From IMG/VR virus record IMGVR_UViG_3300030673_000004, positions 1 through 64,000 of that record: 64,000 bases of DNA; one strand, given 5' to 3'. The notes beneath the pieces are model-generated. The model did not search any database, was not told the DNA's origin, and saw only the letters and a program-made list of their open reading frames with translations. Within the stretch, counting starts at the first letter, position 1. Every line of letters begins with the position of its first letter. A program made the translations under genes and the position numbers. Of this stretch, positions 2,757 to 38,305 are shown in pieces.

Positions 2757-3773
2757 TTAGACCTCATGAGTAAAACAGGAACGGTAGTTTCTCAATTCAT
2801 CAGCAGCATGCTGGATATAAAGATCATCCAGCCAATCGGACCAAAACGTATAATCAGGCGCAGGCAGATTGTTTGGAATCTCACGAACTCGAAGAATCTC
2901 ATCAGCAATCCACGCCTCAATGAATGGCCGGGACCACTCATTAGCACGAACGCGAAGCAACTCAGCACGACGAGGAGATGGGAGAGTAATACGCCCCGTC
3001 GTCAGATACTCCTCAAGTTCCCACACAACACGAAGAGCATGGTAATAAGCTTTAAGATCCGTTCCATCAGCAGCGGCTGCAGCTTTTGCACGGTCCCCGA
3101 AAGCATTCAATTTATTCACAAGAATAGGATACACTTCAGCCAAACTACGTCCCAGGGGGAAGGCACAATCAGGACCATACAGGTACATCTCACCAGCCTG
3201 AGCACCACGACGAGGTTCTACCGAGAAATGAGTCAGCCCCTCAAAGACACCTGTGTCAACAAACGACTTGAGTTTAAGGTTCACGTGATCACCTTGCGTG
3301 AACGAACCTGTATAAGACAAACAAGCATCCTGCACATGAAGCAATTCGTTGTACTTTTCACCCTTAGCAGAATACTTAGCGGCCTGACCTCGACAGTAAC
3401 CAATGAAGGGCATTACGATATTCGTCTGCAGCTTTTCACGATGCTCTAAAATGTAGTCCCACACAAAAGACGTGAAGATCAGACACGACTTTGGAGCATG
3501 CAGCAACTCCAGAACATAAGTCTGGCCACCAAGAGCCTGTTTGATGAAATGCCGCAAATCATAACACTTATCGTCCACGTCTGACGCGGTATTCTTCGTC
3601 GCCTTATTCGTGCCGTCTTCACGAGCAGGTACATACAAGTGATTAATCAACCGGCGCGAGTCTGCCATGAAGATATTGACAAAATCCGTGTCACTCTCAG
3701 GTGTGTTAGTTCCAAACAAGCGGGATCCGAAGATTACCTTTGAGATAGTACGGCCAAGAGGTAAGTTTTCCAC
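2757..3773 (-). CDS. DNA polymerase beta-superfamily nucleotidyltransferase (T4 NrdC.11/RlaP-like)
   Basis: FGSRLFGTNTPESDTD (GS...DxD) and DLKAYYHALRV; GTG start after the cassette SD. Confidence 0.8.
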   Translation of the reverse strand: MENLPLGRTISKVIFGSRLFGTNTPESDTDFVNIFMADSRRLINHLYVPAREDGTNKATKNTASDVDDKCYDLRHFIKQALGGQTYVLELLHAPKSCLIFTSFVWDYILEHREKLQTNIVMPFIGYCRGQAAKYSAKGEKYNELLHVQDACLSYTGSFTQGDHVNLKLKSFVDTGVFEGLTHFSVEPRRGAQAGEMYLYGPDCAFPLGRSLAEVYPILVNKLNAFGDRAKAAAAADGTDLKAYYHALRVVWELEEYLTTGRITLPSPRRAELLRVRANEWSRPFIEAWIADEILRVREIPNNLPAPDYTFWSDWLDDLYIQHAADELRNYRSCFTHEV

Positions 3774-3780
3774 GAAGTGC

Positions 3781-3832
3781 TCCTTGTTGAGGTGACAAGG
3801 AACAATATACATTAATTATGCTTAGCTGTCAA
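3781..3832 (-). promoter_or_regulatory. repeated sigma70 promoter-leader cassette, diverged copy
   Basis: TTGACA(3832-3827)-17-TATATT(3809-3804) with the same CTTGTCACCTCAACAAGGAG leader. Confidence 0.8.
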
Positions 3833-4241: not shown

Positions 4242-4345
4242 GGTCTTATTCTCCTGTGTTACTTGTCTGTGTTCTCATGTACGTTGTGTAAACTCAGCAC
4301 ATTCTTAATATAATCAAACATTAACTTTTGTCACTACTTCTTTGC

Positions 4346-4915
4346 ATGAAGATTAAACTTAGTACTTACGCAAAGAATAACGGCATCCACTATCAGACAG
4401 CTTGGCGGTGGTTTCAGAAAGGTTTAATTCCGGGTGCTACTCAAGCACCAACAGGTACTGTCTTCATAGAAGAGCCAGCAACAGCAACAGCATTAAAGCC
4501 TGTAGTTGTTTGTTACTGTCGGGTATCTAATCAAAGTAGGCGTAAGGAGCTACAGTATCAAGTAGATAGGTGTCTCTCTTATTGCGCTGCTAAAGGCTAC
4601 GCTGTTGATAAAGTGTTCAAAGAAGTTGCTTCCGGCATGAATGACAACCGAAAAGAACTATGGGCAGCTATCAATGCAGAACCAACTATAATTGTGGTTG
4701 AGAATAAAGATCGACTTACTAGATTTGGTTTTAATTACATAGAAAAGTTACTTCTCCCTAAATGTACTATCGAAGTTATATCTCCAGCACAGACAGATGA
4801 ACAAGACCTAATCAAAGATATGATTTCTGTAGTCACATCCTTCTGTTGTCGATTATATGGCTTGCGTAGAGCAAAAAATAAAGTTAATGCTGTAAAAGAA
4901 GCTCTTGAGTTATGA
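4346..4915 (+). CDS. tnpA: IS607 serine-recombinase transposase
   Basis: N-terminal MerR-like HTH (GIHYQTAWRWF), YCRVS catalytic Ser, VVENKDRLTRFG, SFCCRLYGLR. Confidence 0.93.
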   Translation: MKIKLSTYAKNNGIHYQTAWRWFQKGLIPGATQAPTGTVFIEEPATATALKPVVVCYCRVSNQSRRKELQYQVDRCLSYCAAKGYAVDKVFKEVASGMNDNRKELWAAINAEPTIIVVENKDRLTRFGFNYIEKLLLPKCTIEVISPAQTDEQDLIKDMISVVTSFCCRLYGLRRAKNKVNAVKEALEL

Positions 4916-6189
4916 CTTCATTTATTCGCACAAGTCAGCATAGCTTAAAAGACCTTAATAAATGTAAAGCATATGAGCTAAACCTGTTTATCCGTGCTTA
5001 CAGAGAAGCTGTAAATGTTTATGTTGATTTTCTGTGGAATACTAGAATTGAATTTAATACTACTGTTCTTGATGTAAAAGAACATCAGTACAATGTACCA
5101 AAGTTTATACCTAAGCTACTAGAAAATTTTAATACGCTACTAACGTCTAGGGCGTTGAAGTGTGCCTCTACGCAGGCTTGTGGGGTAGTTGCCTCTGTTT
5201 TAGATAAAAGACAGAAAGATGAGAGTAAATTAGAGTGGTTTTATTCTCAAGGTAAAAAGCCATCAGCCGCACTAATTGAAAGATTATCGAAACCACCTGT
5301 ATGTCCTAACACACAAAATATAAACTGCGAACTGAATAGTATTATAGTCAGTGTTGGTGCAGAAATTAATAGTTTTGATTTATGGCTTAATTTTTCAGCG
5401 TTGTTCAAAAGTAAACGAGGTTTTAAGCTGGCTGTGCCCGCTAGGCATCATAGGCAATCTCGGAAATGGCAGGCAAGAGGAAAGTTACTTACATCTATTC
5501 TTTTGAATGAGCACCAATTTAATCTACGTTGGGACGTTGAAGAGCCTAAGAAGCGTACTTCTGGTACTATCGTAGGTGTAGATCAAGGGATTACGGATTT
5601 ATTAACAATATCAAATAATCAAGAGTTTCCAATAGACATTCATGGGTACACACTTACCTCTATTTTGCATAAGATAGCTAGAAAACGTAAAGGGTCTCTA
5701 GCCTTTGCTGCTGCCCAGCAGCACAGAAAGAATTATATTAATTGGTATGTCAAGAAACTTGATTTAGCTGATGTAAAAGAGGTAAAACTCGAAAAGATAA
5801 CAAATATAGGCTACAGAAGAACATCCAGTAGATTTCTTCGTGGCTTTACAAATACGTTGATTAGAGATTCACTAGAACGCCTATGTTTGGAAAGCGGTGT
5901 CCGTTTTTCGCTCATTGACAATGAATTCAATAGTCAACGTTGCAATAAATGCGGTTGGACACAGAAGAGTAATAGAAAAGGTAAGTTGTTTCTTTGTAAA
6001 AACTGTAAGCATGAAGCAGATGCTGATGTAAATGCTTCATGTAACATTTTAATCAGGGATAGCTTAATTCTACTACCTTTTGGGTTCCGTGCTAAAAAGT
6101 TAAACATTAACGGGTTCTTTTGGACTCAAGAACATGTTGCTTTGAAGTACGGGGAAGAGCTTACAGTCCTTCTTAACCGAGAAACTTAA
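4912..6189 (+). CDS. tnpB: TnpB RNA-guided RuvC nuclease
   Basis: RuvC-I VGVDQG, RuvC-II KLEK, Zn ribbon CNKCG..CKNC, RuvC-III DADVNASCNI; ATGA overlap with tnpA. Confidence 0.9.
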   Translation: MTSFIRTSQHSLKDLNKCKAYELNLFIRAYREAVNVYVDFLWNTRIEFNTTVLDVKEHQYNVPKFIPKLLENFNTLLTSRALKCASTQACGVVASVLDKRQKDESKLEWFYSQGKKPSAALIERLSKPPVCPNTQNINCELNSIIVSVGAEINSFDLWLNFSALFKSKRGFKLAVPARHHRQSRKWQARGKLLTSILLNEHQFNLRWDVEEPKKRTSGTIVGVDQGITDLLTISNNQEFPIDIHGYTLTSILHKIARKRKGSLAFAAAQQHRKNYINWYVKKLDLADVKEVKLEKITNIGYRRTSSRFLRGFTNTLIRDSLERLCLESGVRFSLIDNEFNSQRCNKCGWTQKSNRKGKLFLCKNCKHEADADVNASCNILIRDSLILLPFGFRAKKLNINGFFWTQEHVALKYGEELTVLLNRET

Positions 6190-6240
6190 AGTTTATAAAT
6201 ACTTATACTTTAAGTAACTGTTACAACACGTCGCATACAA
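6100..6240 (+). ncRNA. putative TnpB omega RNA (boundaries approximate)
   Basis: Inferred from position at the tnpB 3' end and element right end; hairpin TTAAAGT...ACTTTAA at 6186-6213. Confidence 0.4.
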
Positions 6241-7337
6241 GAGTTCATACTTTCACCGGACTCAACACAAAACCGAAGAGAACAACGATTCCACACAGAG
6301 GGCACGGAAACCATTGGTACCATCTCAAGAATCGTCGGTACATCCGAAACAACACGATCTAAAGCAGATAGCAGAAAAGGTAAGTTCATCGTATTAAACT
6401 TATTCAGCACTTTCCATGGATTGTACCAAGCACCACGAGTAAACAACAAGGAGGTCATTGCTTCAGAATTGTACGAGCCATTAGGAGCAAGAACAGAAAT
6501 ACCATACGGCTCAAAAAAGGCGCAAAGAGCGTCTTTATATGAATCCAACGGACGAACGTACTCTTTGAATACATAATCCGCGCTCACGTATACATAGCCA
6601 CAAGTACTAGCAACTAATCTGGCAAAGTAACTCTTACCGCTGCCAATAGTACCAAAAACTCCAAGGAGATTACGGCAAGTAGCGAGTGACATACCAAATA
6701 AACGAAGTTGCCTAATAGCAGAGCTTGAAATATACGAAAGTTCGGGTGAGCTCACAAAAAAAGTATAAGGCAAAGTCTTTTCTGCTAAGTCAAAAACAAA
6801 CTGCCGCTGCACAAGTTCAGACTTTAGATCCCCTACATCGCGCAAGCCGCGTATAATACTGACTTGATACGAAGGTATAGAGGAGTAATGCTGAAAAACA
6901 TCTGCAAGAGTACCTCTGAACTTAACAGTTTCATAAGACGAGGGAACACCAGGAATAGAAAAAGGGAAAACAGAGAATCCCGATGAAAAAACAGACGAAG
7001 CATTAAGTTTATCTGGATTCTGTCCAATAGCAACAATCACCTTATCAAAAGCATGAGTTGCTTGCTTCACGATATCCAAATGACCTTTATGAAAAGGATT
7101 AAATGAACCAGCGTAGATACCGACACGAAGTGTTTTCTTCTTTAAGCATGCCTCATACGCATCAATTCGTTTGCTATGCTGTCCTTGAAGCAGAGCACGA
7201 ACCAACGAAATATGTCCAGAAACAAACTCAGCATAAGGAAGAAAAGAATACTCAGCATAAATTTTATCGCTATACGATAGTAGGTCCGGAAGATCAGACT
7301 GCAAGACAGAACGATCATACTTATTAAACTTATGCAC
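6210..7337 (-). pseudogene. coaD: HD C-terminal half + phosphopantetheine adenylyltransferase + dephospho-CoA kinase N-terminal part, truncated by IS607
   Basis: YAGSFNPFHKGHLDI, IIRGLR, YISSSAIR (CoaD); GVFGTIGSGKS..SAD (CoaE P-loop). Confidence 0.8.
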
Positions 7338-8749: not shown

Positions 8750-9907
8750 TTATCTTAATGTAGCCACAAAAGAAATTAAAGATGCCTTATCTGACAACAG
8801 AGAACGAGCATAGATTGCATCTAGCAGCTTACGCTGAACAACACCACAAGAAGCACCGGAGAATCCCAGGGAAACAAGATCACCACCAGTAAGAGCCAAT
8901 TCCTTAGGGAACAACGGAATATCTTGAGTTGATTTATTCAAGCAACGTGCCTCAAAATAGGATGGCGGACAACAAAAACAGCGCAAAGTTAGAGACACAT
9001 AATTGTATAACTCCCGAGAGCGCACAAGAGAATGCACAGCCTTGGTACTAACACCTGCAGTATAAGAGCGAAAAGCCTGCAGTGCAGATAACTGAATAGA
9101 TGTAGGTGAAACATACGATAAATCTGGCTTACCTGACGCAAATAAGGAGACAAATCCAACAGCATCACGATCAGACAAGGATAGACCTTGAAGATCAACT
9201 GGTTTTGGATCAAAATCTACACCAAACAGAGAAGTACCGATAGTTGTTCGGAGCAACCCACAAAGAACTTCAGTATTGAATGACTTAATAAACGCCTTAT
9301 GCAACTCTGCTTGAATACGCTCAGGTGAGCAACTAAGCAGCGTAGAACTCATCTCAAGTGCCGCCACAAACGTAGTGTCATCAATACTAAACCCGAGACG
9401 ACTCGCAAACTGAACTGCACGAAGAATCCGAAGAGGATCTTCAGTGAACCGATCCCGAGCATCACCCACAGCACGAATCACACCAGATTGCAAGTCAGCG
9501 GCACCGCCAAAGGGATCAATTGTTACACCGCACTCGACATCATAAGCGATAGCATTAATTGTAAAGTCCCGCCGAGCTAAATCATCAACAACAGACAAGT
9601 TACTATCCAGTAGAACTTCAAAGTCACGATGACCGGCACCTGTAGACTGCTCTGTCCGAGGAAGAGCAAAATCATAAGAGTCACCGTCAATGAGAGCAGT
9701 CACAATGCCAAAACTACGTCCTACCTCAGATGCGTGCCCGAGAGAAGATACTGCTTGCTGAACCTGTTCTAGAGATAAGCCAGTAACAAGATAATCAATA
9801 TCCTTTGGAACAAGGCCAAGCACAGCATCTCGCACACAACCACCAACGCGGTACAGGCGACCACCTTGTTGCTCAATGCTAGCTAGAATCTTATGTTCAG
9901 TCTTCAT
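8750..9907 (-). CDS. cca: class II CCA-adding tRNA nucleotidyltransferase
   Basis: VGGCVRDAVLG..KDIDY, DLARRDFTINA, FTEDPLRILRAVQF, SPERI. Confidence 0.88.
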   Translation of the reverse strand: MKTEHKILASIEQQGGRLYRVGGCVRDAVLGLVPKDIDYLVTGLSLEQVQQAVSSLGHASEVGRSFGIVTALIDGDSYDFALPRTEQSTGAGHRDFEVLLDSNLSVVDDLARRDFTINAIAYDVECGVTIDPFGGAADLQSGVIRAVGDARDRFTEDPLRILRAVQFASRLGFSIDDTTFVAALEMSSTLLSCSPERIQAELHKAFIKSFNTEVLCGLLRTTIGTSLFGVDFDPKPVDLQGLSLSDRDAVGFVSLFASGKPDLSYVSPTSIQLSALQAFRSYTAGVSTKAVHSLVRSRELYNYVSLTLRCFCCPPSYFEARCLNKSTQDIPLFPKELALTGGDLVSLGFSGASCGVVQRKLLDAIYARSLLSDKASLISFVATLR

Positions 9908-10227: not shown

Positions 10228-10521
10228 TTAAGGCAACCAGCCACTGGGAACTTCTGCAAGTGAAATGCCATAGGCAGTCTCCAGATCACCTTTACCATAC
10301 TGAGAGCGCGTGTAATCACGCATGGTTGTCTCAACAAAACACCGGACTGCTGTCTGTAACATAATAAGGCGCGTCTCTACCGTGGAGGGTACATGGGACG
10401 CCTCTAAGGCAGCACGCAGCATTCCTTTGCCATACTGGGCCTCTGTATAGTTTTGCATGCTCTCTAACCACACAGCAACAGCATGCTGTAAGCCTGCAAG
10501 ACGATCCGCACACTGGGACAT
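10228..10521 (-). CDS. hypothetical protein with internal duplication
   Basis: LQHAV..NYTEAQYGKGML and LQTAV..DYTRSQYGKGDL; start moved to 10521. Confidence 0.55.
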   Translation of the reverse strand: MSQCADRLAGLQHAVAVWLESMQNYTEAQYGKGMLRAALEASHVPSTVETRLIMLQTAVRCFVETTMRDYTRSQYGKGDLETAYGISLAEVPSGWLP

Positions 10522-10546
10522 TAAGAACCTTTCAAAAAGACCAAAC

Positions 10547-10575
10547 TTGACATCAAAACAAAGATACTTTATATT
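10547..10575 (+). promoter_or_regulatory. sigma70 promoter; predicted leaderless mRNA
   Basis: TTGACA-17-TATATT-7 nt-ATG(10583). Confidence 0.75.
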
Positions 10576-10582
10576 AGGTAGT

Positions 10583-11071
10583 ATGCCAAGCAAAAATGAT
10601 ACAAATAAGAAAATTGTCTACATAGACATGGATGGTGTTTTAGTAGACTTCGAGTCTGGTGTAAAATACGAAACGCTGCATGCGCCATTTATGGACATTC
10701 AACTGTATCAGGACAGATGGGAAGACTATCCTGGTATCTTTGCTCGCATGAATCCTATGCCTGGAGCCATCGACGCATTTATGCGCTTAGCGGCTAATCC
10801 CCAGCTAGATGTATACATTCTAAGCACAGCGCCATGGGATAACGAATCTGCATGGCTAGATAAAATACGATGGGTGAAACGCTATCTTGGTGATGCCGCA
10901 AAGAAAAGACTGATATTATCACATCATAAAAATCTAAACATAGGTGATTTCTTGATAGATGATAGACTGAAGCATGGTGTTCCAGACTTCCAAGGAAAAC
11001 ACATACATTTCGGGCAGGCCCCATTTGAGACATGGAATAAAGTCGTAACCTACCTAGAGCAAAATATATAA
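10583..11071 (+). CDS. 5'(3')-deoxyribonucleotidase (NT5C, HAD)
   Basis: YIDMDGVLVDF, ILSTAPW, GDFLIDDR. Confidence 0.88.
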   Translation: MPSKNDTNKKIVYIDMDGVLVDFESGVKYETLHAPFMDIQLYQDRWEDYPGIFARMNPMPGAIDAFMRLAANPQLDVYILSTAPWDNESAWLDKIRWVKRYLGDAAKKRLILSHHKNLNIGDFLIDDRLKHGVPDFQGKHIHFGQAPFETWNKVVTYLEQNI

Positions 11072-11133: not shown

Positions 11134-11742
11134 TCAGATCACGTGAGATGCTACGGCATAATCACGATCTCCACGGAGAACGAGATGGTAAGTAACCGGC
11201 TCAGAACTTCTCTCAATATGCTCAACAACCTGAGAAAAAGTAATTTTCTGATTGTTGTCATCAACAACAACCGCATCAAACTCAGGAGTTGCTTCAGCAT
11301 ACGTATGTGCCTTCTCAAACAAGAGAATAGCATTTCGCAGCCGATTGGGTGTCGCGATAGGCTCAGAAGCGGCAACAGAGGCTGCAGGAGTAGGGACATA
11401 AGACGCAAGACTTGCGCTATACTTCCGCCAGTACTCTGATACAACAGCGTTGCGAACATCTGCCATGATCGGACCAGTCAGCGAAGCGAATTCCATGAAA
11501 CGACCGTTCTCACGGGCCTTCCCTGGAAACGAGATGAAGATTCCACCATTGGTGTTCCGAATAACGTGGATACCACGAAGTGCAATAGTGCCATACGAAA
11601 CACCTGTGGGCAAAGACCCCAGAAGCAACGAGACACAAGCACGAGCCACACTCTGATGGGTGGAATTTGGATCACGAGGAGGAAGCTTATTGAGATAGAC
11701 TTCAACAGAGGAGACAGAAATGATCGGGTTGTCGGTAGGCAT
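11134..11742 (-). CDS. spoVG: SpoVG-family nucleic-acid-binding protein with C-terminal extension
   Basis: LRGIHVIRNTNGGIFISFPG...VRNAVVSEY. Confidence 0.7.
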   Translation of the reverse strand: MPTDNPIISVSSVEVYLNKLPPRDPNSTHQSVARACVSLLLGSLPTGVSYGTIALRGIHVIRNTNGGIFISFPGKARENGRFMEFASLTGPIMADVRNAVVSEYWRKYSASLASYVPTPAASVAASEPIATPNRLRNAILLFEKAHTYAEATPEFDAVVVDDNNQKITFSQVVEHIERSSEPVTYHLVLRGDRDYAVASHVI

Positions 11743-11810: not shown

Positions 11811-11839
11811 AATATACTAAGGAATATATCCTATGTCAA
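11811..11839 (-). promoter_or_regulatory. sigma70 promoter for the spoVG-like gene
   Basis: TTGACA-17-TATATT. Confidence 0.7.
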
Positions 11840-12407
11840 GGTCTTTACCAGATTTAGCTAATGATACCTTTGCTCGCTCAAGCACTTGACGAGCTCCCTC
11901 TCGGGTAAGGTGATAAATATCCTTGATATCATCTAGCAGTAGATCCGACAAAAATCGTAACTTAACAATTTTCAGATCACGCGCCGACAAATTACTGTGC
12001 AACAACAGACTGGATACTTCGTCCACGTATTCAACCTGACACATGTTCGCCCCATCAGTATCATCTATCAGTATATCCGCATACAAAGATATGTCATCAT
12101 TAAGACAATCATACTTATGAGATTTGCGAAAAGTACATAAAGCACCCCGGATGTAGTAAGTCACCCAATTATTAAGGGATCCTTTCAATGGGTTATATGT
12201 TTTAATTGCTAATGGTATCTTAGATAGTGCATACGAGAACATGTCATCTTGCCATACCCACAAATTGTAACCACGACATGTCTTAAGGGCAAACCAATGA
12301 ATCAAGGGCACGTAAGATTGAATAATAAAGTTTAAGGCGCAAGCATCCCCTGCCTGTGCCTTAGAAATAGTTGTTGGATGAATCTCGGTCTTAGTAGTCC
12401 TAGCCAT
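11817..12407 (-). CDS. small sigma70-family sigma factor
   Basis: AQAGD..ALNFIIQSYVPLI, AIKTYNPLKGSLNNWVTYYIRG (region 2); LSARDLKIVKLRF..TREGARQV (region 4). Confidence 0.8.
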   Translation of the reverse strand: MARTTKTEIHPTTISKAQAGDACALNFIIQSYVPLIHWFALKTCRGYNLWVWQDDMFSYALSKIPLAIKTYNPLKGSLNNWVTYYIRGALCTFRKSHKYDCLNDDISLYADILIDDTDGANMCQVEYVDEVSSLLLHSNLSARDLKIVKLRFLSDLLLDDIKDIYHLTREGARQVLERAKVSLAKSGKDLDIGYIP

Positions 12408-12446
12408 GTACGATATATAGTAAAAATCTACTGCACAAACAAGCCG

Positions 12447-13214
12447 TTACAGCAAAGAACCTTGAAAAACACACTGACGAGTAGGTTTACTACCACGCAA
12501 GAAGGACAAGGCATAGGAGTCACTAAAGGCATAAGCAAACCTATGCTTAAACATACGGCCAAAGTTCGACAGATCAATCGGGCCGCGAAGAGCTTCATAA
12601 GCACCATGAACATCACGCATAGTAAAGGTATTGTCCTTAGGGCTCACAGCCAGCCCACGCAGGATGTCTTCATCCCACGCATGCTTTTGCAGATGAGCGA
12701 GCATCTCAGACAAAATAGTATGGTGATCAAAAGCCAGTGTACCAGCAAGAGCAGTAGAGACAGTCACCCACTGAGCAGTAGCTGCGTCATCATTTGCTTT
12801 AATTGGTAATGAATCTGCCTGATCGTGGTGCAGCAAACAGAAATAGGATACATCTGCGGTGTACCACCGAGGATCCCGATCATAGGAAGCATATGTCTTA
12901 AACTGATGAAGAGGCACAGTACCCATAGGAATACTGGTTTCTTCTTCCAACTCACGCAATGCTGCGTGGTCTACACTCTCCTTGTCCTGAATGTTAACAA
13001 AACCACCAGGAAAGGCAAAGCAACCAGCGTAGGGAGCAAACTTCCGTTCAATCAACAGCACCTGCAGCCGATCCAGGTTCCGAGTGCTCGGATCCAATCG
13101 GAAAATCACAATATCAGCGGTAAGCGTAGGACGTTCAAACACGGTTGGGTCGTAACCAGAATCCGGGTAAAGGTCCAAATACGATCCGTGCTTTCCAGAA
13201 ATACGTTCAGTCAT
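12447..13214 (-). CDS. nrtR: NrtR-type Nudix (ADP-ribose) + winged-HTH regulator
   Basis: PGGFV..ESVDHAALRELEEET, RDPR, LAFDH; C-terminal FTMRDVHGAYEAL...SNFGRMF...RGSKP. Confidence 0.8.
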   Translation of the reverse strand: MTERISGKHGSYLDLYPDSGYDPTVFERPTLTADIVIFRLDPSTRNLDRLQVLLIERKFAPYAGCFAFPGGFVNIQDKESVDHAALRELEEETSIPMGTVPLHQFKTYASYDRDPRWYTADVSYFCLLHHDQADSLPIKANDDAATAQWVTVSTALAGTLAFDHHTILSEMLAHLQKHAWDEDILRGLAVSPKDNTFTMRDVHGAYEALRGPIDLSNFGRMFKHRFAYAFSDSYALSFLRGSKPTRQCVFQGSLL

Positions 13215-13809
13215 TGTAAAGCCCCAATTTGTAACAAAGTTTAACCGTTTCCGGTGCCATTAATTTAAGTAACTCACTATCTGGTGCCTTAGCAGCAAAA
13301 GATTTACGAGCTTGTGTTGAAGATATACTCTGAAAATCAGCAGGAAGAGCAGGTAACAGCGTGTGGAAACTGGATTTAAGCCATGGCAAGGATACACTGG
13401 AACCCATGCCACGAGGGAGCACAATAATAGAGAACTCCCGAATGAGAGATTTTCCATTAATCCAATGATCCTCAATCTGTTCAGCTTGGTCTTGACCAAC
13501 AATCAAAGAAACAGCATCCACACCAGGAGACATCTTAGCATAGTTAAGGAGTTCATAGGTACTCCCAGTGCTACTACTAAGCTCAGACTCAAGCAGACTT
13601 ACATGAGTGCAAGGAATACGCTGAAAAAGACTCTCACACAAATGCATACGAATGCTGTAGTCAACCAGATCTTTGCCATAAGCATGTTTAAGAACGGGAA
13701 TGATCCAAACCCTATCCACATTTGGACAAGTGGCAAGGGTTTGACACACTACGGCGCGATGCGCTAGTGTTGGAGGATTAAACGACCCACCGTAGAGTGC
13801 CACACGCAT
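13207..13809 (-). CDS. nadD: nicotinate-nucleotide adenylyltransferase
   Basis: ALYGGSFNPPTLAH, LIVGQD..W, ISSTQAR. Confidence 0.88.
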   Translation of the reverse strand: MRVALYGGSFNPPTLAHRAVVCQTLATCPNVDRVWIIPVLKHAYGKDLVDYSIRMHLCESLFQRIPCTHVSLLESELSSSTGSTYELLNYAKMSPGVDAVSLIVGQDQAEQIEDHWINGKSLIREFSIIVLPRGMGSSVSLPWLKSSFHTLLPALPADFQSISSTQARKSFAAKAPDSELLKLMAPETVKLCYKLGLYND

Positions 13810-14627
13810 TAGCCAAACACCTTACCCTGCAGAACACTCTCTACGGTAGCAACAGTGCAGCCTTGCTTAGCCATGTTCTCAAGAAAACGAATCCCTTGCT
13901 CTTCATAGCCGGTGACATCCGACATACAATCTTCCAAGAGCACGATCTTCTTCAGATCAAAACCCAAGTTGTAGTCTTGAATGCGCTGAACCATCTGCTC
14001 AACCGAGCACCGAACACAATGCGAACGAGCCTCACCACCAACGACGATGGGCAGATTACCGAAAAGGAGATTTCCAAGCAGATTGTCATTGAAATCTGCC
14101 AAGATATTCCCATGCCCTTTATACTCCGGCTCAAAAATGCCAAAGCTCTCCAAGTCCTGATGGTATCCCTTCTTGGCCATAGTGGCAATACGGCCCGGAC
14201 CACTGTTCTCCCACGAATGCACAGCAGCAACAAGGTTGTTACTCAGTTCATAGCTCTGTGTGCCAGGAACACAATGAACAGGCCAAATCATGCTACCACG
14301 AATCGGATCAATGTAACGCTTTGCGTATTCCTGCTTTTTCGGATCGGCAGCTTGAATAGCACCACTCTCAAGAGCAAGAAGGTTAACTAGGGTAAAGGGC
14401 TCTGGAGAAACCCCTTCCGAAGTCAGCCACCAACCAGGATGACCAATGTGAGCAATAGGGTGCTGATCTACAGTAAGAAAAATATCAACAATATCCTCCT
14501 CTGCCTCCGTAATGAAATTCGAGAATCGAACGACATCCTCAAAAGCACCAGCAGGGCACAGCGGCTCGCCAGGGCAAACAAATGCCTTCTGAAAATCAAT
14601 TCCAAAAACCTTAAACGGTGTACCCAT
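13809..14627 (-). CDS. pncA: nicotinamidase (isochorismatase family)
   Basis: IDFQKAF, DQH, WPVHCV, KG, GEARSHCV; start at 14627 after AAGGAG. Confidence 0.85.
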   Translation of the reverse strand: MGTPFKVFGIDFQKAFVCPGEPLCPAGAFEDVVRFSNFITEAEEDIVDIFLTVDQHPIAHIGHPGWWLTSEGVSPEPFTLVNLLALESGAIQAADPKKQEYAKRYIDPIRGSMIWPVHCVPGTQSYELSNNLVAAVHSWENSGPGRIATMAKKGYHQDLESFGIFEPEYKGHGNILADFNDNLLGNLLFGNLPIVVGGEARSHCVRCSVEQMVQRIQDYNLGFDLKKIVLLEDCMSDVTGYEEQGIRFLENMAKQGCTVATVESVLQGKVFG

Positions 14628-14654
14628 CAGAAATCTCCTTCTCAGTGAATGCAC

Positions 14655-16715
14655 TTAACCAACAGTCAATAACTTAGCCTTGAGCTCCTTGTATGCCTTA
14701 GTGTAGTAAACACCACCAATAGCTTCTCGAAAATCGAACCCATAAGCTCTACGGCTCACGACAAGTACAGGCGGAGCCTGAACACGCTTCACAATGCCCA
14801 TGCCCTTAAACAAGCCCCACCAACGTTCAAGATCTGCAACGAAATCTTCCGCTGTTGGGAAAAGATACTTAAACTCTGTATATTTGTCAACATCAATCTC
14901 AAGATGTTCCAAAAGATCACCCATAATATAATGATTAAGGGTATCCTCAACATTATCGCGATTCCATGGCTCAACCCACGAAGCAAATAGCTTGTCGTGG
15001 TACCAGTAGGTGATAGGATCACCCTTACCTGCATCAACATTCTGATCAGCACTCAACTCCGCCGAGGGCTTAAGTGTGTACAAGGAGTCAGGAATGATCT
15101 TATGATCAAAAGTGTTCTCCACAGCACGAAGAGTTTCATAAACTTCATGCTTCCAGAGATCCGCTAGAGGAGCAAAATACCCCATGTGATCACCGCCCAT
15201 AGTGCAGTAACCAACAGTAAGCTCAGCTTTGTTTCCATTGTTGGGAAACACCGCATGAAACCCAGCAGCCAACATAGCCTGAACACCAGCACCACGCATA
15301 CGAGCCTGGATATTCTCCGTATCATCCCAGAACTCCGTGGCCTTAACGTCCGACTCCCACAGCCCAACATGAACACTGGTCATGAAGTCCGTAACAGACT
15401 TCCCAATAGGAATCTCCAAGTAGCGAATACCCAAATTATCTGCAATTGTTTTTGCAATACCCTTGGTTGTTTCGCTATTAAATTCAGTAGGCATATTAAC
15501 AGCGATCACGTTTTCAGCACCAAGAGCCTTTACATGAAGCAACGTGGACAGTGCCGAGTCCACACCACCACTCAACCCAATCACAGCACGCTTGATGCCA
15601 CCCTGCTCACAAAACTTCTGGATGCCGTAAGCCAAAACGTCATGAAGTTCTGGGTCTTGCTGCTCAGTCTGCCAAGGCGACTCAGCAGCCACTTGGACAC
15701 TCGTAGGAGTAACAGTAACCAAACCCATGCATTCCCTGAGAGGGGGTAGCGCACAGATAACAGCACCGTCCATATAAACAGTAGAGCTCCCGTCAAAAAC
15801 AAAAACATCCTTACCGTTGTTCTGAATACCAACACTGTTGACATAGATCAGAGCATTAAACTCTTGCGAATGCTGAGCAAAACGACGATTGCGAGCACCA
15901 TTCTTGCCTTGAGTAAATGGTGAGCAACTCAAGTTTACATGCACATGCATCTTCCCTGGAGCCGACACGCTGCGACCCCGGCAGTTATGAATAGGCTTAG
16001 TAGCATAATCATCATCCCAACCATCTTCACAGATCGACGGTGTGATATACAAATTGTCTTCACTGTAGATAGACATTATGGGTGTATGAGCAGTGCCGCT
16101 ACGAAAATAACGCTTATCTTCAAACTCACGATAGTTTGGCAGATTCGTTTTATGGTACTCCATAGCGTACCTGCCTAGGATTACAGCGCTATTAAAACGC
16201 TCCCTGCGACCATCTTCGTAATTCGTATCACCCAAGGTCACAGAACCTAAAATAGCAGTAATACCAAGTTCCAGAGCAACAAAGGAAATATCCTGTTTTA
16301 GGTACCCCAGACAATCCTTAAGGAAAGCTGCATCCTCCCAGTCATCACCTACCATGTAGCCAGGAAGAGCCATTTCAGGAAAAACAGCAACCTGAGCACC
16401 AGCATCCTTGGCAAGGTGCAGGTACTTAATGATCTTAGCGGCATTCAAATCAGGGCGCTTTGCAACAACCTCAATCTGACAGATAGCGATAGTCTTTGCA
16501 GTAGTAAGCATTTCGTCGTCCTCTAATTCGTCGTTAATTCCACAAAGCTTAACCTGGTCCCATAGCAGATAATCTTCCTCAGCATCATCTGCCACATGGA
16601 GAAACCCACAGGTACCATTTGCGTGCTTTGGCTTTTGTGCATCTAATCCCCAGTAAGGACATTTGCCTCTGCCATCATAGCAATAGATACCTGTAGGAAT
16701 TTCCAGATGGCACAT
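14655..16715 (-). CDS. nadE: glutamine-dependent NAD+ synthetase with a 68-aa Cys-rich N-terminal extension (alternative start 16511)
   Basis: Nitrilase domain FPEM, KTNLPNYREFEDKRYF, ICED; synthetase GLSGGVDS, ENIQARMR, NKAELTVGYCT, PSAEL. Confidence 0.92.
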   Translation of the reverse strand: MCHLEIPTGIYCYDGRGKCPYWGLDAQKPKHANGTCGFLHVADDAEEDYLLWDQVKLCGINDELEDDEMLTTAKTIAICQIEVVAKRPDLNAAKIIKYLHLAKDAGAQVAVFPEMALPGYMVGDDWEDAAFLKDCLGYLKQDISFVALELGITAILGSVTLGDTNYEDGRRERFNSAVILGRYAMEYHKTNLPNYREFEDKRYFRSGTAHTPIMSIYSEDNLYITPSICEDGWDDDYATKPIHNCRGRSVSAPGKMHVHVNLSCSPFTQGKNGARNRRFAQHSQEFNALIYVNSVGIQNNGKDVFVFDGSSTVYMDGAVICALPPLRECMGLVTVTPTSVQVAAESPWQTEQQDPELHDVLAYGIQKFCEQGGIKRAVIGLSGGVDSALSTLLHVKALGAENVIAVNMPTEFNSETTKGIAKTIADNLGIRYLEIPIGKSVTDFMTSVHVGLWESDVKATEFWDDTENIQARMRGAGVQAMLAAGFHAVFPNNGNKAELTVGYCTMGGDHMGYFAPLADLWKHEVYETLRAVENTFDHKIIPDSLYTLKPSAELSADQNVDAGKGDPITYWYHDKLFASWVEPWNRDNVEDTLNHYIMGDLLEHLEIDVDKYTEFKYLFPTAEDFVADLERWWGLFKGMGIVKRVQAPPVLVVSRRAYGFDFREAIGGVYYTKAYKELKAKLLTVG

Positions 16716-16716
16716 A

Positions 16717-18009
16717 TCAGGCAGCCAACCCGTAAGTGCGCTGCAGGATGTCTTCGTGACGGCTCTCGTTGAAGTAGTCACCTACCATGTAGGTACGCTT
16801 CAGAGCATCTTCATGCACAGCGTCCTCACACATAGCCTTACCAGCAGTGTCGCTAACCTTTGCCACTGGACGATCATTGACTTCAACAGCCTTCATCACG
16901 AGTTGAAGTGCCTTTACACCCAAGTCATTAGTGAAGTCCGTACCAATGCCAAACGATACCTTAGCACGACCAGCAAACACCTTGAGCAGATTCTCACAAG
17001 TATCTGGATTAAGGCCATCCGAGAACATCAGCACCTTCGTCTTAGGATCAATGTGGAGTTTCTCGTAGTGCCGAATAATCTTCTCACCCCAAATGAACGG
17101 ATCGCCCGAGTCATGACGAGCACCAATGTAACTCTGTGCCAAGAGCATGTCAAAGTCACGAAGGAAAGCATCAACACCAACGATATCCGAAAGAGCAATG
17201 CCCGTCTTGGCACGGTAAAAATGCTGCCACAGATCAAGCATATACTTATTCGAGCTGCCAAGCGTCACATTATCCAGAGCCTGACCGACCTCCAAGAACT
17301 CGTGGGCCATTGTGCCACTGAACGGCGTCTTAAACTCGACAGCCATCTGAACATTCGACGTGCCCAAAAAGACACCAGGAATATCAGCAAACTCCTTGAC
17401 AAGATTTTCAACCACGTAGTGCTGCCAAGCAAACGATGCACGACGACGAGTACCAAACTCGCTGAACGTAAATGCATACTGCTTAGCCAGATCCTTATAA
17501 CGCTTGATCTTGTCCTCAAGTCGCTGCATGCCCTCGTACAGATCCAAATCCTTGTACACATCCCGGAAATATGCTTCCTGCGTCATGGTCATGGCATGGA
17601 TCTCAAAATTGGTATTGTACCGAGCTGGACCATGCGTCCGGATGTCCAAAAGATCACCATTGGGCTCAATCGTGATGAAGTCACGGTTGAGCTGAGCCAA
17701 GCGCAGAAATTCAAGGTAAGGACGAGTCATATAAGGAACAGCGTGCAAACGAGCAAGTGTCCCTGGACTCATGCGACGAGTACAAGCCAAGTCCATCTGG
17801 TTGCTCACCTCAGCAGCGTACTTTGCCAGGTTGACACCAGTAGTACGATTGTGAAACTTCTTCGACATCGTAACATGAGGAAGAAGCGCATCATAAACCT
17901 GACCCATAGTCAGGAAGTAGAAGTCGATGTCATCGAAGGCATGGTTCCGCCCCGCAAGCTTCGACTGATGCTTCTGTGCGAATTCTTCCAAAGTAATATG
18001 TTCTGCCAT
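16717..18009 (-). CDS. pncB: nicotinate phosphoribosyltransferase
   Basis: DFYFLTM, EFGTRRR, GTSNV, GTMAHE, RHDSGDP, FSDGL, FGIGT, KVSD. Confidence 0.9.
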   Translation of the reverse strand: MAEHITLEEFAQKHQSKLAGRNHAFDDIDFYFLTMGQVYDALLPHVTMSKKFHNRTTGVNLAKYAAEVSNQMDLACTRRMSPGTLARLHAVPYMTRPYLEFLRLAQLNRDFITIEPNGDLLDIRTHGPARYNTNFEIHAMTMTQEAYFRDVYKDLDLYEGMQRLEDKIKRYKDLAKQYAFTFSEFGTRRRASFAWQHYVVENLVKEFADIPGVFLGTSNVQMAVEFKTPFSGTMAHEFLEVGQALDNVTLGSSNKYMLDLWQHFYRAKTGIALSDIVGVDAFLRDFDMLLAQSYIGARHDSGDPFIWGEKIIRHYEKLHIDPKTKVLMFSDGLNPDTCENLLKVFAGRAKVSFGIGTDFTNDLGVKALQLVMKAVEVNDRPVAKVSDTAGKAMCEDAVHEDALKRTYMVGDYFNESRHEDILQRTYGLAA

Positions 18010-18029
18010 GATTGAATCTCCTACTTGGG

Positions 18030-18050
18030 TTAGAGTAACTTTTACTCTTT
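18030..18050. promoter_or_regulatory. candidate NrtR operator
   Basis: AGAGTAA-CTT-TTACTCT inverted repeat with a GT-N7-AC core, between the GTAAAT element (18058-18063) and the pncB SD. Confidence 0.65.
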
Positions 18051-18057
18051 AAGTAGA

Positions 18058-18110
18058 ATTTACTACAAAATTCTAAAAAAACAAGAGGTCATGTACAAAA
18101 AACCGTAAAT
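18058..18110. promoter_or_regulatory. divergent pair of GTAAAT promoter elements
   Basis: ATTTAC 18058-18063 facing pncB; GTAAAT 18105-18110, 7 nt before the helicase ATG at 18118. Confidence 0.55.
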
Positions 18111-18117
18111 CGTGAGC

Positions 18118-19764
18118 ATGGAGCAAGAAAAACCTATCGCATATCTGGACTACCGACTGTTTGTACCAACAAAAGCGGTTAACCAAGATATGATGGATGC
18201 CTTTGAAGACATCATCCCTGACTTCTTTTCACCTGTTGATGAAAACGGAGATCTTCGAGATAACCGAGACCTAAGACTTATCCACTACAAAAAGCATGAT
18301 GAGGGTTGGGTATCTTTTTCGCGAGGTGATCTTGCAAAGATCAAAGACATCATTTTCCCCTACGTCAGCATCTCGGACTGTCGCGCCGTTCGCCCGCTAG
18401 CACTGCAGCCAAAATGGCTTGGAGTTAAAAAAGATAATGGTGAACTTGTTCCTCTGTATGATAATCAGATAGAAACAATCGCAAGAACTCTCCACACGGG
18501 GTATGGACAACTACAAGCACCACCTAGATATGGTAAGACTGTATGTATGTCTAACATGATAACGCAATTGCAACAGAAAACACTGGTTCTTGCACATCAA
18601 GTAGAATTGTTGATACAATTTGAAGAACGCTTCCGTGCTTGTACAAATATAGAAGAGCTTGAACGCAAAGCAGGTCACAGACTTGTTGGCATATGTGACA
18701 AGATGGAAGAATTTGATCAATATCTTGTTTGTGCTGCTACCTGGCAAGGATTCTTAGCCGGAAATGCGAATCATAGTTTACTGCCAAAGTTGAAAGACTC
18801 CTTTGGTTGTGTTATGGTTGATGAAGCACACAGAGCAGCATCTGAATGTTTCTCAAAAGTTGTAGCACAATTCAACCCACGCTTCAGGTTTGGCTTTACA
18901 GCAACGCCTGAAAGAAAAGATGGTCTAGAGGCAGTTGTCAATAACATCATCGGGCCTGTAGTTGCATCCGGCGACGTACCCCAACTACCAATGAGAATCC
19001 GCCCAGTTTATACCGGATTCAAACCTGTATTTGAGCGCTGGTATGCATATGAACGACAAATACGAGATGCGAGCCCACGAAACAAACTTATTCTAAAACT
19101 CGTAGTAGATGATGTAAACAAGGGGCACTCTGTTCTTATTGTATGCACACGTAAAGAACATATAAAGAACCTAGTTGATACATTAAATCGCAAGTTCAAC
19201 GTGCCCGCTGAGGGTTGGTACTCTGATGTCAAAGATAGGTCCGGTGTTTTAGGCCGAGCTAAAGCAGGAGCTACAAAAGTCATTGTCGCAATGAGATCCA
19301 TGCTCCTCGGTCTAAATGTACCACGTTGGAGCAGTATTCATATTGTTGTTCCCAGTAACAACCCCTTCAATTTCTATCAAGAATTCGCACGTGTACGTAC
19401 ACCAAACGAAGGAAAAAAGTATTGTGTTATCCGGGATTATATTGATAACCACAAAGCTGCCATAACCTGCTTTAAGACACGCTTTGGTGTATATACTAAT
19501 CCAATGTATGCACCAGCATATTTTGAAGATGAGCATGGAAATCTAGTAAACCCACCAACAATGAGGATGATACAAGAACTTGCAAAAAGAGATCCAGATG
19601 AAATAAATCTAGAATCCATACCTAATGAAGCACGACGTGCCAGAAACATTTTTCAAAGCAAACCAACCTATGATGATACACCTAAGGAAGACATCGCACC
19701 TCTGGGATTAAGTAAGTTTGAAAAAATCAAAGCACACAAAACAGCTCTCGGAAATGACCTCTGA
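18118..19764 (+). CDS. SF2 DExH helicase (UvsW/Rad25-like)
   Basis: APPRYGKT, VDEAH, GFTATP, QEFARV. Confidence 0.85.
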   Translation: MEQEKPIAYLDYRLFVPTKAVNQDMMDAFEDIIPDFFSPVDENGDLRDNRDLRLIHYKKHDEGWVSFSRGDLAKIKDIIFPYVSISDCRAVRPLALQPKWLGVKKDNGELVPLYDNQIETIARTLHTGYGQLQAPPRYGKTVCMSNMITQLQQKTLVLAHQVELLIQFEERFRACTNIEELERKAGHRLVGICDKMEEFDQYLVCAATWQGFLAGNANHSLLPKLKDSFGCVMVDEAHRAASECFSKVVAQFNPRFRFGFTATPERKDGLEAVVNNIIGPVVASGDVPQLPMRIRPVYTGFKPVFERWYAYERQIRDASPRNKLILKLVVDDVNKGHSVLIVCTRKEHIKNLVDTLNRKFNVPAEGWYSDVKDRSGVLGRAKAGATKVIVAMRSMLLGLNVPRWSSIHIVVPSNNPFNFYQEFARVRTPNEGKKYCVIRDYIDNHKAAITCFKTRFGVYTNPMYAPAYFEDEHGNLVNPPTMRMIQELAKRDPDEINLESIPNEARRARNIFQSKPTYDDTPKEDIAPLGLSKFEKIKAHKTALGNDL

Positions 19765-33184: not shown

Positions 33185-33766
33185 ATGAGATCAATTGCAT
33201 TTATGGGGCCATCCCGTGGAGGTAAGTCCTCTATCGCTAAAGAAATTGCCAGACAACTAGATCCCAATGTTTACGGAAACATTGGGATGCTATCCTTTGC
33301 GGACACATTAAGAGAAATAGCAAGTACACGCTTTGGGTGGACAGGTGAAAAGACCCCAAAGCAACGAGACATAATCCAAAAAGCCTCAGAATCCTGGAAA
33401 CGACAACACGGTGAAGATATCTTTGCAATAGACTTACTGGTCCGTGCAAAATGTAAACCAGCTTGCTACGATACTATTATAATTGATGATCTGAGACATG
33501 GCTGCGAACTAGGAGCCCTACGCAATAACACACAGGCAACAATACTGTGTATAGATGAAGAGCAAGCGGAACACGTCTGGGCTCAGGCATTCAGCGCACA
33601 TAAAACAGTAGATGATGAATTCTCATGGGCGGTACATAGGTCAGAGCTAGAATGGCGAGGCTTTCGACATTTGTACCAACATATAAATAATGATAAAACT
33701 TCGCCATATGGTTTTGACATATCTGTAAATAAAATCATGCAGATCTTACATCAGGGAGATAACTAA
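33185..33766 (+). CDS. deoxynucleoside monophosphate kinase-like P-loop kinase
   Basis: GPSRGGKS, SFADTLR, IIDDLRH, HRSE. Confidence 0.75.
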   Translation: MRSIAFMGPSRGGKSSIAKEIARQLDPNVYGNIGMLSFADTLREIASTRFGWTGEKTPKQRDIIQKASESWKRQHGEDIFAIDLLVRAKCKPACYDTIIIDDLRHGCELGALRNNTQATILCIDEEQAEHVWAQAFSAHKTVDDEFSWAVHRSELEWRGFRHLYQHINNDKTSPYGFDISVNKIMQILHQGDN

Positions 33767-34881
33767 TGCCGGAAGACATGCTAAACATTGGAGACTTTGA
33801 CGACATCCTAGCAGATGCTCCGGTCCAAGAAGCTCCTATTGAGGACACCGCACCACATGCCCTAAAAATAGGCTTCATCGGTGCAGGACAAGCTGGATGC
33901 AATCTAGCTAATACGTTCTGGGATACCTGTGGATATCGTCGTGTTATTCTGTTTAATACTACAGGAAACGATGTCCGTGGTTCTGCTGTCCCAGAAGATC
34001 TTCAAGTGATTGCAGAAGGATTTGATGGGGCTGGTAAAAATCGAGATGTTGGACAGAGAGCAGCCGAACAAAGTGCAACAAAGCTGCTTGCAACCATGTC
34101 TAAGCGGTTTGGTTCGGACACAGACTACATCATCGTCCTGGCATCTGGTGGCGGTGGAACAGGGTCTGGGGCGGCTGTAAAACTAGCCGAATACGGGCGT
34201 CAATATCTATGCTCCAAAGGACTTTCGCCGGAAGAAGCAGTTAAAAGAGTTGGTTTTATCATCATGCTGCCTACAGATTCAGAAGGATCCGTATCCAAAA
34301 GTAATGCCCTCTCGCTAGTAAATGATGTAACCACATTTGGTGGTTCACCCGTAATGTACATTGATAATGGACGAGTTTCATCACTTGTCAAGAGTACACT
34401 GGGCGGGTGGTACTCACAAGCAAACACCATGATTGCACGCCTATTTGATATGTTCAACTTCCTAGCAAGCAAGGATTCCAGTCGGCAAGCTTTTGACCCC
34501 CAAGATTATCGAACGGTTCTATCGTCGGGTTTGGTAAGTGTTGGGCTCACACGCCTAAACAGATACACTAACGACATGGATCTAGCTAATGCCCTACAGC
34601 AGAATCTTAAAACAAGTTTGCTTGTTGATGATGTTGGCTTGTCTTCCGGGACTCATGCAGCTATTATAGTCCTAGGTGATGATGCTACACTTAATGAGAT
34701 TCCTATGACAGCACTAGATAATGTACGAACGGTCATCTCATCTCTTCTAGGATCTGGTCCAAGTAAACCTGTTACCATTCATACCGGTATCTATGCAAAC
34801 AAGTCACCTGTTATTCAAGTATTCTCTATGCTGGGTGGCCTAAGTTTTCCAGCATCCAAACGAAGGAAATTAGGGGGTTGA
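33766..34881 (+). CDS. tubulin/FtsZ-family GTPase (PhuZ/TubZ-like)
   Basis: GFIGAGQAGCN, FNT, DGAGKN, GGGTGSG signature, IDN. Confidence 0.88.
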   Translation: MPEDMLNIGDFDDILADAPVQEAPIEDTAPHALKIGFIGAGQAGCNLANTFWDTCGYRRVILFNTTGNDVRGSAVPEDLQVIAEGFDGAGKNRDVGQRAAEQSATKLLATMSKRFGSDTDYIIVLASGGGGTGSGAAVKLAEYGRQYLCSKGLSPEEAVKRVGFIIMLPTDSEGSVSKSNALSLVNDVTTFGGSPVMYIDNGRVSSLVKSTLGGWYSQANTMIARLFDMFNFLASKDSSRQAFDPQDYRTVLSSGLVSVGLTRLNRYTNDMDLANALQQNLKTSLLVDDVGLSSGTHAAIIVLGDDATLNEIPMTALDNVRTVISSLLGSGPSKPVTIHTGIYANKSPVIQVFSMLGGLSFPASKRRKLGG

Positions 34882-38264: not shown

Positions 38265-38280
38265 TCGTTTCTCCCAAAAC

Positions 38281-38305
38281 AAAAAGGCAAGAGTTTCCTC
38301 TTGCC
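38281..38305 (-). terminator. intrinsic terminator
   Basis: GGCAAGAG-GAAA-CTCTTGCC-TTTTT on the minus strand. Confidence 0.7.

Follow-up and report, generated by a model that had tools for sequence, protein, structure and literature searches.

A five-gene phage cluster resembling bacterial salvage pathway I for NAD+

Can a phage carry the enzymes needed to rebuild NAD+ from nicotinamide, and what would it gain by doing so? The question is raised by five co-directional genes that occupy positions 12447-18009, on the minus strand, of bases 1-64000 of the IMG/VR record IMGVR_UViG_3300030673_000004, a genome of 375,537 bp from peat metagenomes; this 64,000-base stretch is called the window below. 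A preliminary description of the window had reported four tightly packed genes with recognisable catalytic motifs, pncB, nadE, pncA and nadD, and had proposed that their products lead from nicotinamide through nicotinate, nicotinate mononucleotide (NaMN) and nicotinate adenine dinucleotide (NaAD) to NAD+. All four genes are present (Table 1), and family scores, catalytic residues, folds and conserved synteny support the proposed chain. The block is one gene larger than the four-enzyme set: a Nudix gene overlaps nadD by 8 nt, which gives the order pncB-nadE-pncA-nadD-Nudix. Junctions within the block range from this 8-nt overlap to a 27-nt gap and, because the five genes are so closely packed, we propose that they form one transcription and translation unit read from 18010-18111. 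On balance, we lean towards the view that in this operon a phage carries its own complete version of bacterial salvage pathway I for NAD+, a view that is meant to include the steps and the benefit set out below.

Nicotinamidase (PncA), the entry enzyme of such a route, converts nicotinamide to nicotinate and NH3. The 272-aa protein that had been called PncA gave no match in Pfam (PF00857 was not found even at E=10), NCBIfam or PHROGs, and the earlier call therefore lay beyond the reach of routine annotation. We found 27 homologues of this protein, the more distant of which (P0015 and P0017-P0020) do match PF00857. In an 18-sequence alignment, the triad D20/K162/C213 and the metal ligands D63/H65/H127 are invariant (residue numbers follow the 281-aa open reading frame (ORF), the protein itself having 272 aa). 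When the profile of these 18 sequences was compared with the PDB, nicotinamidases came out on top, with yeast Pnc1 (2h0r) at 5e-20 in an alignment that spans the DxHP and WPVHCV motifs. The AlphaFold2 (AF2) model had a pLDDT of 94.8, and its top 10 Foldseek matches were all nicotinamidases, with target TM-scores of 0.54-0.81. The profile, the fold search and the invariant triad and metal ligands uphold the pncA call, and on sequence and model we accepted the protein as a divergent long-form PncA, with about 70 extra residues, that is predicted to hydrolyse nicotinamide.

Long-form PncA is encoded by 122 IMG/VR contigs. In a quick, midpoint-rooted tree, from which no direction of transfer is claimed, the Burkholderiales sequences form one clade (approximate likelihood-ratio test, aLRT, 99), the viral sequences lie outside it and are far more diverse, and the window lineage is a supported viral clade amid these diverse viral sequences. 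The diversity of the viral proteins and their position outside the Burkholderiales clade argue against a recent pick-up from a host. One IMG/VR contig (IMGVR_UViG_3300035208_007133, with loci L015 and L170) carries the full gene set with two long-form PncA copies, one after nadE and the other just before nadD-Nudix, about 4 kb away.

PncB forms NaMN from nicotinate, phosphoribosyl pyrophosphate (PRPP) and ATP. The window protein scores above both curated nicotinate-specific cut-offs of NCBIfam (NF003704, 391.6 vs 379; TIGR01514, 342.9 vs 269.55). Its nearest solved relative is P. aeruginosa PncB2 (1yir, 2e-71), all six solved relatives are nicotinate phosphoribosyltransferases (NAPRTases), and the histidine of the GTxAHE motif, H236, is invariant (alignment A4). 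By the curated cut-offs, its assignment as a nicotinate-type enzyme, and not Nampt or Namat, is well supported.

NadE converts NaAD to NAD+. Its gene starts at ATG 16715, 1 nt past the pncB stop, which gives a protein of 686 aa and not the 708-aa ORF that opens with GTG. The best solved relatives are glutamine-dependent NadE enzymes (5kha, 3e-48, and 4f4h), both of which align only from residue 75/76 on, and the alignment with 5kha contains the motifs FPE, NLPNY, ICED and GLSGGVDSA (the SGGxDS P-loop). The protein passes the domain model TIGR00552 (107.9 vs a cut-off of 63.65) and does not reach the full-length equivalog NF010588 (299.8 vs 479), being divergent and longer by some 75 residues at the N-terminus. 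This N-terminal extension contains several cysteines and is possibly a metal-binding module; it matches no known family, and a search of the ESM Atlas gave no usable lead. It is common only to the close relative L003, and it is missing in the related loci L001, L006 and L015 and in solved NadE structures. A 67-aa ORF between pncB and nadE in L001 was considered as a counterpart of this extension and rejected, as the two do not align.

NadD forms NaAD from NaMN and ATP. There is a 1-nt overlap between the nadD-like gene and the pncA stop, and the product of the nadD-like gene matches Pfam CTP_transf_like (PF01467) at 31.3 vs a cut-off of 21 and carries the nucleotidyltransferase motifs GGSFNPPTLAH ((H/T)xxH) and ISSTQAR (ISSTxxR). 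Its scores lie below the equivalog cut-offs (TIGR00482, 71.2 vs 112.45; NF006479, 66.6 vs 164). The top NCBIfam matches, each under its cut-off, are all adenylyltransferases of NaMN or nicotinamide mononucleotide (NMN), and the solved relatives 3h05, 5llt and 1kam comprise a NadD-like Vibrio protein and NaMN adenylyltransferases.

The fifth protein consists of a Nudix domain with an intact catalytic box and a C-terminal winged-helix-like domain. Its score against NF050029 (NtrR) was 84.6, under the cut-off of 400, and its PDB matches by sequence (HMMER) were 2fml and 3gz5, the latter being NrtR of S. oneidensis. The top 11 Foldseek matches of its AF2 model (pLDDT 84.7) were full-length NrtR-family regulators (AraR, 2fml and S. 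oneidensis NrtR, including its structure on DNA) over 229-256 alignment columns; the protein aligns with bacterial NrtRs end to end, its C-terminal domain with the NrtR winged helix. The Nudix box, on the other hand, reads RELEEETS in the window, whereas bacterial NrtRs adjoining pncA have the degenerate form RKLRxKT. RELxEET is kept in every phage Nudix copy examined, likewise in NadM-Nudix enzymes, and the degenerate signature typical of non-catalytic regulators is absent from the window protein. In the NrtR family, an intact box goes with real ADP-ribose pyrophosphatase activity, as in NuhA (PMC2330246). Because its box is intact as in NuhA, the window protein is predicted to have this activity; judged by sequence, ADP-ribose hydrolysis is the likelier role, and a role as an ADP-ribose-responsive regulator of the operon is a possibility. 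A single chain of 467 aa in the L006 lineage (L006:8780-10183) combines NadD with the NrtR-like Nudix protein; it recalls NadM-Nudix and NadR, and this Rosetta-stone fusion suggests that NadD and the Nudix protein are functionally linked.

Table 1. Features of the operon and of its surroundings, in window positions.
Feature	Position	Strand	Length (aa)	Basis
pncB, nicotinate phosphoribosyltransferase	16717-18009	-	430	NCBIfam; Pfam NAPRTase and NAPRTase_N; PDB
nadE, glutamine-dependent NAD+ synthetase	14655-16715	-	686	Pfam CN_hydrolase PF00795 and NAD_synthase PF02540
N-terminal extension of NadE	16491-16715	-	~75	
pncA, divergent long-form nicotinamidase	13809-14627	-	272	Homologue profile; AF2 model; Foldseek; catalytic residues
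nadD-like nicotinate-mononucleotide adenylyltransferase	13207-13809	-	200	Pfam CTP_transf_like; motifs; PDB
NrtR-family Nudix protein	12447-13214	-	255	Pfam NUDIX; PDB matches; AF2 and Foldseek
Operon leader/promoter region	18010-18111	-		Divergent from helicase gene; promoter-like element, two palindromes, ribosome-binding site
RlaP-type RNA-repair nucleotidyltransferase	2757-3812			
Serine resolvase	4328-4915	+		
TnpB/Cas12f-like protein with TNB domain	4912-6189	+		
PPAT and dephospho-CoA kinase fusion	6210-7337	-	375	
CCA-adding enzyme	8750-9907			
NT5C-type 5'-nucleotidase	10457-11071			
SpoVG-like protein (weak)	11134-11742	-		
Sigma-70/ECF-like factor	11817-12407	-		
Tubulin/FtsZ-family GTPase	33766-34881	+		
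Protein with ThyX-like domain	36546-38282		578	
Family-A DNA polymerase	39046-42447	-	1133	
Second sigma-like protein	50241-51413	-		

The arrangement of the five genes recurs. Their order is kept in L003-L005, at 77% PncA identity, the independent L003 having the same flanks on both sides, and it is kept in L001 and L006 at 45% PncA identity with different flanks. Because the order recurs in independent assemblies at both levels of identity, the juxtaposition of the genes is not due to chance. At least 480 IMG/VR contigs encode a relative of PncB; among the best 80 PncB-bearing loci, viewed over +-10 kb around PncB, 38 have PncB, NadE, a PncA-type protein and NadD together within 10 kb. A survey of phage genomes for the gene set had been suggested in the preliminary description; it thus returned many loci with all four enzymes, as well as the Sinorhizobium phage Phosso with all five families. 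Megablast of the operon against 50,697 GenBank phage records gave no match, nor did that of the related locus L221, while PncB matched 13 of these records, two of them from cultured jumbo phages. L221 itself is a compact pncA-pncB-nadD-nadE cluster with phage-like flanks, and its short canonical PncA (L221:8988-9512) matches only PHROG 19305, labelled 'unknown function'. Since the long form matches no family and this short copy carries such a label, phage nicotinamidases appear to be under-counted in annotation surveys.

Within 6 kb, Phosso (PV764938) encodes, like the window, NadE, PncB, a Nudix protein, an NMNAT-like enzyme and a 'hydrolase' of the isochorismatase family, and the Agrobacterium phage Atu_ph07 (NC_042013) has PncB and a Nudix-cytidylyltransferase-isochorismatase trio, that is, four of the families within 6 kb. 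Unlike the window, both have a short canonical PncA that is detected by PF00857, and other gene orders; the NadE of Phosso is ammonia-dependent, whereas that of the window is glutamine-dependent. No NadE was found within 7 kb of PncB in Atu_ph07 (15 kb examined), and the genome paper of this phage does not discuss the NAD pathway. In bacteria, a scan of species-representative genomes with an alignment of the 10 closer PncA sequences gave 409 loci with long-form PncA, mostly in Burkholderiales, and in 46 of the 80 loci returned the same long-form PncA adjoins pncB, glutamine-type nadE and a Nudix gene, a linkage that lends support to its predicted hydrolysis of nicotinamide. A second Nudix ORF, of NadM-Nudix size, follows nadE in those bacterial loci where this was examined.

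A known bacterial counterpart is salvage pathway I of P. aeruginosa (PA4916-PA4920), which consists of nadD2-nrtR and pncA-pncB1-nadE (Okon 2017, as summarised in PMC6363681 and PMC11535050). NrtR represses both transcription units and ADP-ribose lifts the repression (PMC6363681), and through this pathway the cell makes up for the action of NatT, an NADase toxin with a RES domain (PMC11535050). The phage operon contains the same five families, PncA, PncB, a NadD-type enzyme, NadE and an NrtR-family Nudix protein. In P. aeruginosa they are split over two divergent operons, whereas in the phage they run in one direction; the phage also differs in the intact Nudix box, which is lost in the bacterial NrtRs next to pncA, in the extra Cys-rich N-terminus of NadE, and in the carrier, which is a 375-kb phage.

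If the operon is a copy of this pathway, PncA would deamidate nicotinamide to nicotinate, PncB would join nicotinate to PRPP at the expense of ATP to give NaMN, the NadD-like enzyme would adenylate NaMN to NaAD, and the glutamine-dependent NadE would amidate NaAD to NAD+. The Nudix protein would most likely split ADP-ribose into AMP and ribose-5-phosphate, which would feed PRPP synthesis by the host, and it may also regulate the operon through ADP-ribose. The likely benefit would be an infected cell that can refill its NAD+ pool from the two products of NAD+ breakdown, with no need for host gene expression, when host NADase defences or the long, cofactor-hungry replication of the phage itself deplete this pool. 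A role in counter-defence, the most conditional part of this proposal, is plausible by analogy with the phage NAD+ reconstitution pathways NARP1-3 and with the effect of the bacterial module on NatT.

Several points weigh against this proposal. The four steps would cost about three ATP, PRPP and glutamine, and an NADase may act faster than they can compensate. If nicotinamide is removed, NADases of the SIR2 or RES type could be freed from product inhibition, and nicotinamide itself neutralised NatT (PMC11535050). The preliminary description had noted the absence of a PRPP synthetase from the window, and none was found among the ORFs scanned. No RNA run was found to hold the operon among the runs listed. 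Neither PncA nor the NadD-like protein is recognised at curated cut-offs, and we therefore infer their substrates. Finally, a PPAT-dephospho-CoA kinase fusion, which would serve CoA synthesis, a CCA-adding enzyme and a ThyX-like protein are encoded in the same window, and for this reason general metabolic self-sufficiency fits the locus, rather than a dedicated anti-defence device.

These last genes, together with a 5'-nucleotidase, also speak for the strongest alternative, in which the operon is a set of auxiliary metabolic genes for general cofactor provisioning. More NAD+ would then benefit a huge phage whose infection cycle is long and whose enzymes include NAD(P)-dependent ones, unconnected in any specific way with NADase defence systems. 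Beside the operon we saw no gene related to defence or anti-defence, and PMC11662467 reads such clusters as NAD synthesis for propagation. However, the pathway begins at nicotinamide and is paired with an ADP-ribose-type Nudix protein, and it is the cleavage of NAD+, not its redox use, that yields both nicotinamide and ADP-ribose; moreover, ADP-ribose switches on the homologous bacterial module, which acts against an NADase toxin (PMC11535050). We regard provisioning as a possible but rather doubtful explanation of the operon. Provisioning and counter-defence are compatible and not mutually exclusive.

A second alternative is that the cluster is not a full salvage route from nicotinamide to NAD+, the PncA-like protein acting on another amide, the NadD-like protein acting on NMN, or the enzymes clearing nicotinamide or ADP-ribose as a signal or inhibitor. 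The missing PF00857 match and the additional residues of PncA, the NadD scores below every equivalog cut-off and the intact Nudix box would allow this, and the isochorismatase fold also occurs in maleamate, carbamoylsarcosine and biuret amidases. Against this, the nicotinamidase-specific D-H-H metal triad is invariant beside the D-K-C triad, nicotinamidases lead both the fold search (top ten matches) and the profile search, NadE would have no role unless NaAD were made, and the set of four genes recurs in phages as well as in bacteria. We therefore consider this alternative quite improbable.

The window does have the features of a phage genome. It encodes a family-A DNA polymerase, DnaB, a UvsX-like recombinase, SbcC, topoisomerase II, a clamp-loader subunit and two phage-like sigma-like factors; many of its ORFs belong to no family, and it contains no tRNA (ARAGORN) and no rRNA. 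In each of two peat runs, a single 91.6-kb contig spans 12300-18200, the operon with both borders, with 0 differences. No virion gene was found in the 64-kb window, and the viral assignment therefore draws on these window features and on IMG/VR. On its sequence the contig looks viral: a non-viral origin, which the preliminary description had named as one of the findings that would overturn its reading, is not what the replication module, the tubulin gene and the IMG/VR record point to. A bacterial stretch, whether host island, mis-binned contig or chimeric assembly, would agree with the missing virion genes, with the clear Burkholderiales counterparts of long-form PncA, PncB, NadE and NrtR and with the IS607-like element nearby, but it is highly improbable given an IMG/VR viral genome of 375.5 kb, the phage-type replication and recombination module among family-less ORFs with tubulin and phage-like sigma factors and with neither tRNA nor rRNA, the flanks that the independent relative L003 keeps on both sides, the two identical 91.6-kb contigs, and a PncA clade that sits among diverse viral sequences apart from that of the Burkholderiales.

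How the salvage operon relates to known phage NAD systems can be stated more closely. A 2024 survey in Microbiome described 174 'NAD-jumbo phages', including Preiss-Handler clusters of pncB-nadD-nadE (for example, Kuafu_71), and mentions phage pncA; in its view, the clusters give phages an NAD supply of their own for propagation (PMC11662467). The phage studied here has the traits of a 'NAD-jumbo phage', a genome above 200 kb (375,537 bp) with clustered pncB, nadD and nadE, and it resembles those clusters in joining a huge phage genome with a clustered deamidated route to NAD+. The survey describes the cluster as three genes starting from nicotinate, whereas the window adds a nicotinamidase missed by routine HMMs and the Nudix/NrtR protein; the overlap may be larger than this description suggests. 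Iyer et al. 2021 proposed that NAD synthesis in jumbo phages counters NAD+ restriction by the host and that Nudix domains process ADP-ribose; the versions that they described are all amidated (PMC7824862). The 2024 paper that described NARP1 and NARP2 does not mention PncA, PncB, NadE or NadD, and NARP3 (PnuC and NadR) was published in 2026 (PMC13464706).

NARP2 (Nampt and Nmnat; NadV/NatV in KVP40) is, like the window operon, phage-encoded and leads from nicotinamide and PRPP to NAD+; enzymes of the KVP40 and NadM types also have the adenylyltransferase fused to Nudix, as in L006. NARP2 takes two amidated steps via NMN, whereas the window would take four via nicotinate, NaMN and NaAD, with a nicotinate-type phosphoribosyltransferase and a need for NadE. 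The presence of a PncB-type enzyme, NadE and PncA sets the operon apart from NARP2. NARP1 (Adps and Namat) and NARP3 are, likewise, phage operons that restore NAD+ in cells attacked by NADases; none of their hallmarks, a PRPP-synthetase-like Adps, PnuC and NadR, turned up in the window ORFs scanned, where PPAT-dephospho-CoA kinase is the sole nucleotidyltransferase-kinase fusion. The preliminary description had presented the operon as a third route beside NARP1 and NARP2, a claim that is out of date in view of NARP3 (PMC13464706), the pncB-nadD-nadE clusters of jumbo phages in PMC11662467, and bacterial pathway I with the same families. The operon is thus a case of the already catalogued phage clusters for the deamidated route, and what is modestly new is a clade of long-form PncA proteins, largely viral and so far unannotated, together with an NrtR-like protein whose Nudix box is intact.

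Depleting NAD+ is one of the main strategies against phages. Experiments have established three phage NAD+ reconstitution pathways, and none of the three runs via deamidated intermediates. In the literature searched, the four-step deamidated route is catalogued by annotation only, and we found no paper on this route as an anti-defence system. Phage clusters reported to start from nicotinate may really start from nicotinamide. The locus offers a compact five-gene unit that lends itself to cloning, cultured phages with the same families (Phosso and Atu_ph07) and a bacterial precedent that neutralises an NADase toxin.

The leader of the operon contains a promoter-like element, TGTACA-16-TAGAAT, at 18097-18070 and an AGGAG ribosome-binding site at 18018-18022. 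Promoter and terminator scans gave no more sites than shuffled sequence did, and the promoter is therefore called by its position only. Two perfect palindromes, each occurring once only in the window, lie in the same region. The palindrome TAGAATTT-N6-AAATTCTA (18054-18075) overlaps the -10-like hexamer, and AGAGTAA-N3-TTACTCT, in full AGAGTAAAAGTTACTCT (18032-18048), has a GT-N7-AC core, which is the core of the NrtR operator consensus (PMC2330246). Both palindromes are conserved only in part in the relative L003. From their sequence, the palindromes are a candidate NrtR operator. Rfam, at gathering thresholds, gave no hit in the 64-kb window, neither an NAD+ riboswitch nor one of another kind.

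In its most elaborate form, which we think unlikely, the operon would be an ADP-ribose-triggered counter-defence circuit. The NrtR-like protein would hold the palindromes at the pncB promoter until ADP-ribose made by an NADase released it and turned on the four-enzyme rebuilding of NAD+, with long-form PncA as the entry enzyme; its Nudix activity would then degrade ADP-ribose, feed PRPP and reset the circuit. If true, the phage would sense the product of the defence itself, and the operon would be a fourth phage NAD+ reconstitution pathway.

A freshwater run (X5) contains, over 12300-18200 and at low depth, a strain closely related to this one; 24 single-base differences are listed for the operon. 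This indicates that close relatives of this phage also occur outside peat. Within the window, the gene for a sigma-70/ECF-like factor lies directly downstream of the Nudix gene, with no terminator-like site between it and the operon, and is followed by that for a weak SpoVG-like protein; a second sigma-like protein is encoded at 50241-51413. The tubulin/FtsZ-family GTPase is PhuZ/TubZ-like, as in some jumbo phages, and within the family-A DNA polymerase, residues ~672-732 form an HNH endonuclease segment, which is intein-like or an inserted homing endonuclease.

The genes for the RlaP-type nucleotidyltransferase, the CCA-adding enzyme, the NT5C-type 5'-nucleotidase and the ThyX-like protein together surround the NAD operon with functions in the maintenance of nucleotides and RNA. 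The fusion protein at 6210-7337 was considered as a NadR-like enzyme of a second, NARP3-type route and rejected, as it consists of phosphopantetheine adenylyltransferase (PPAT, residues 71-218) and dephospho-CoA kinase (residues 225-302). One polypeptide would cover the two final steps towards CoA, as eukaryotic CoA synthase does. The serine resolvase and the TnpB/Cas12f-like protein that follows it look like an IS607-type insertion in the phage genome (4328-6189), which coincides with a dip in GC content at 4-6 kb.

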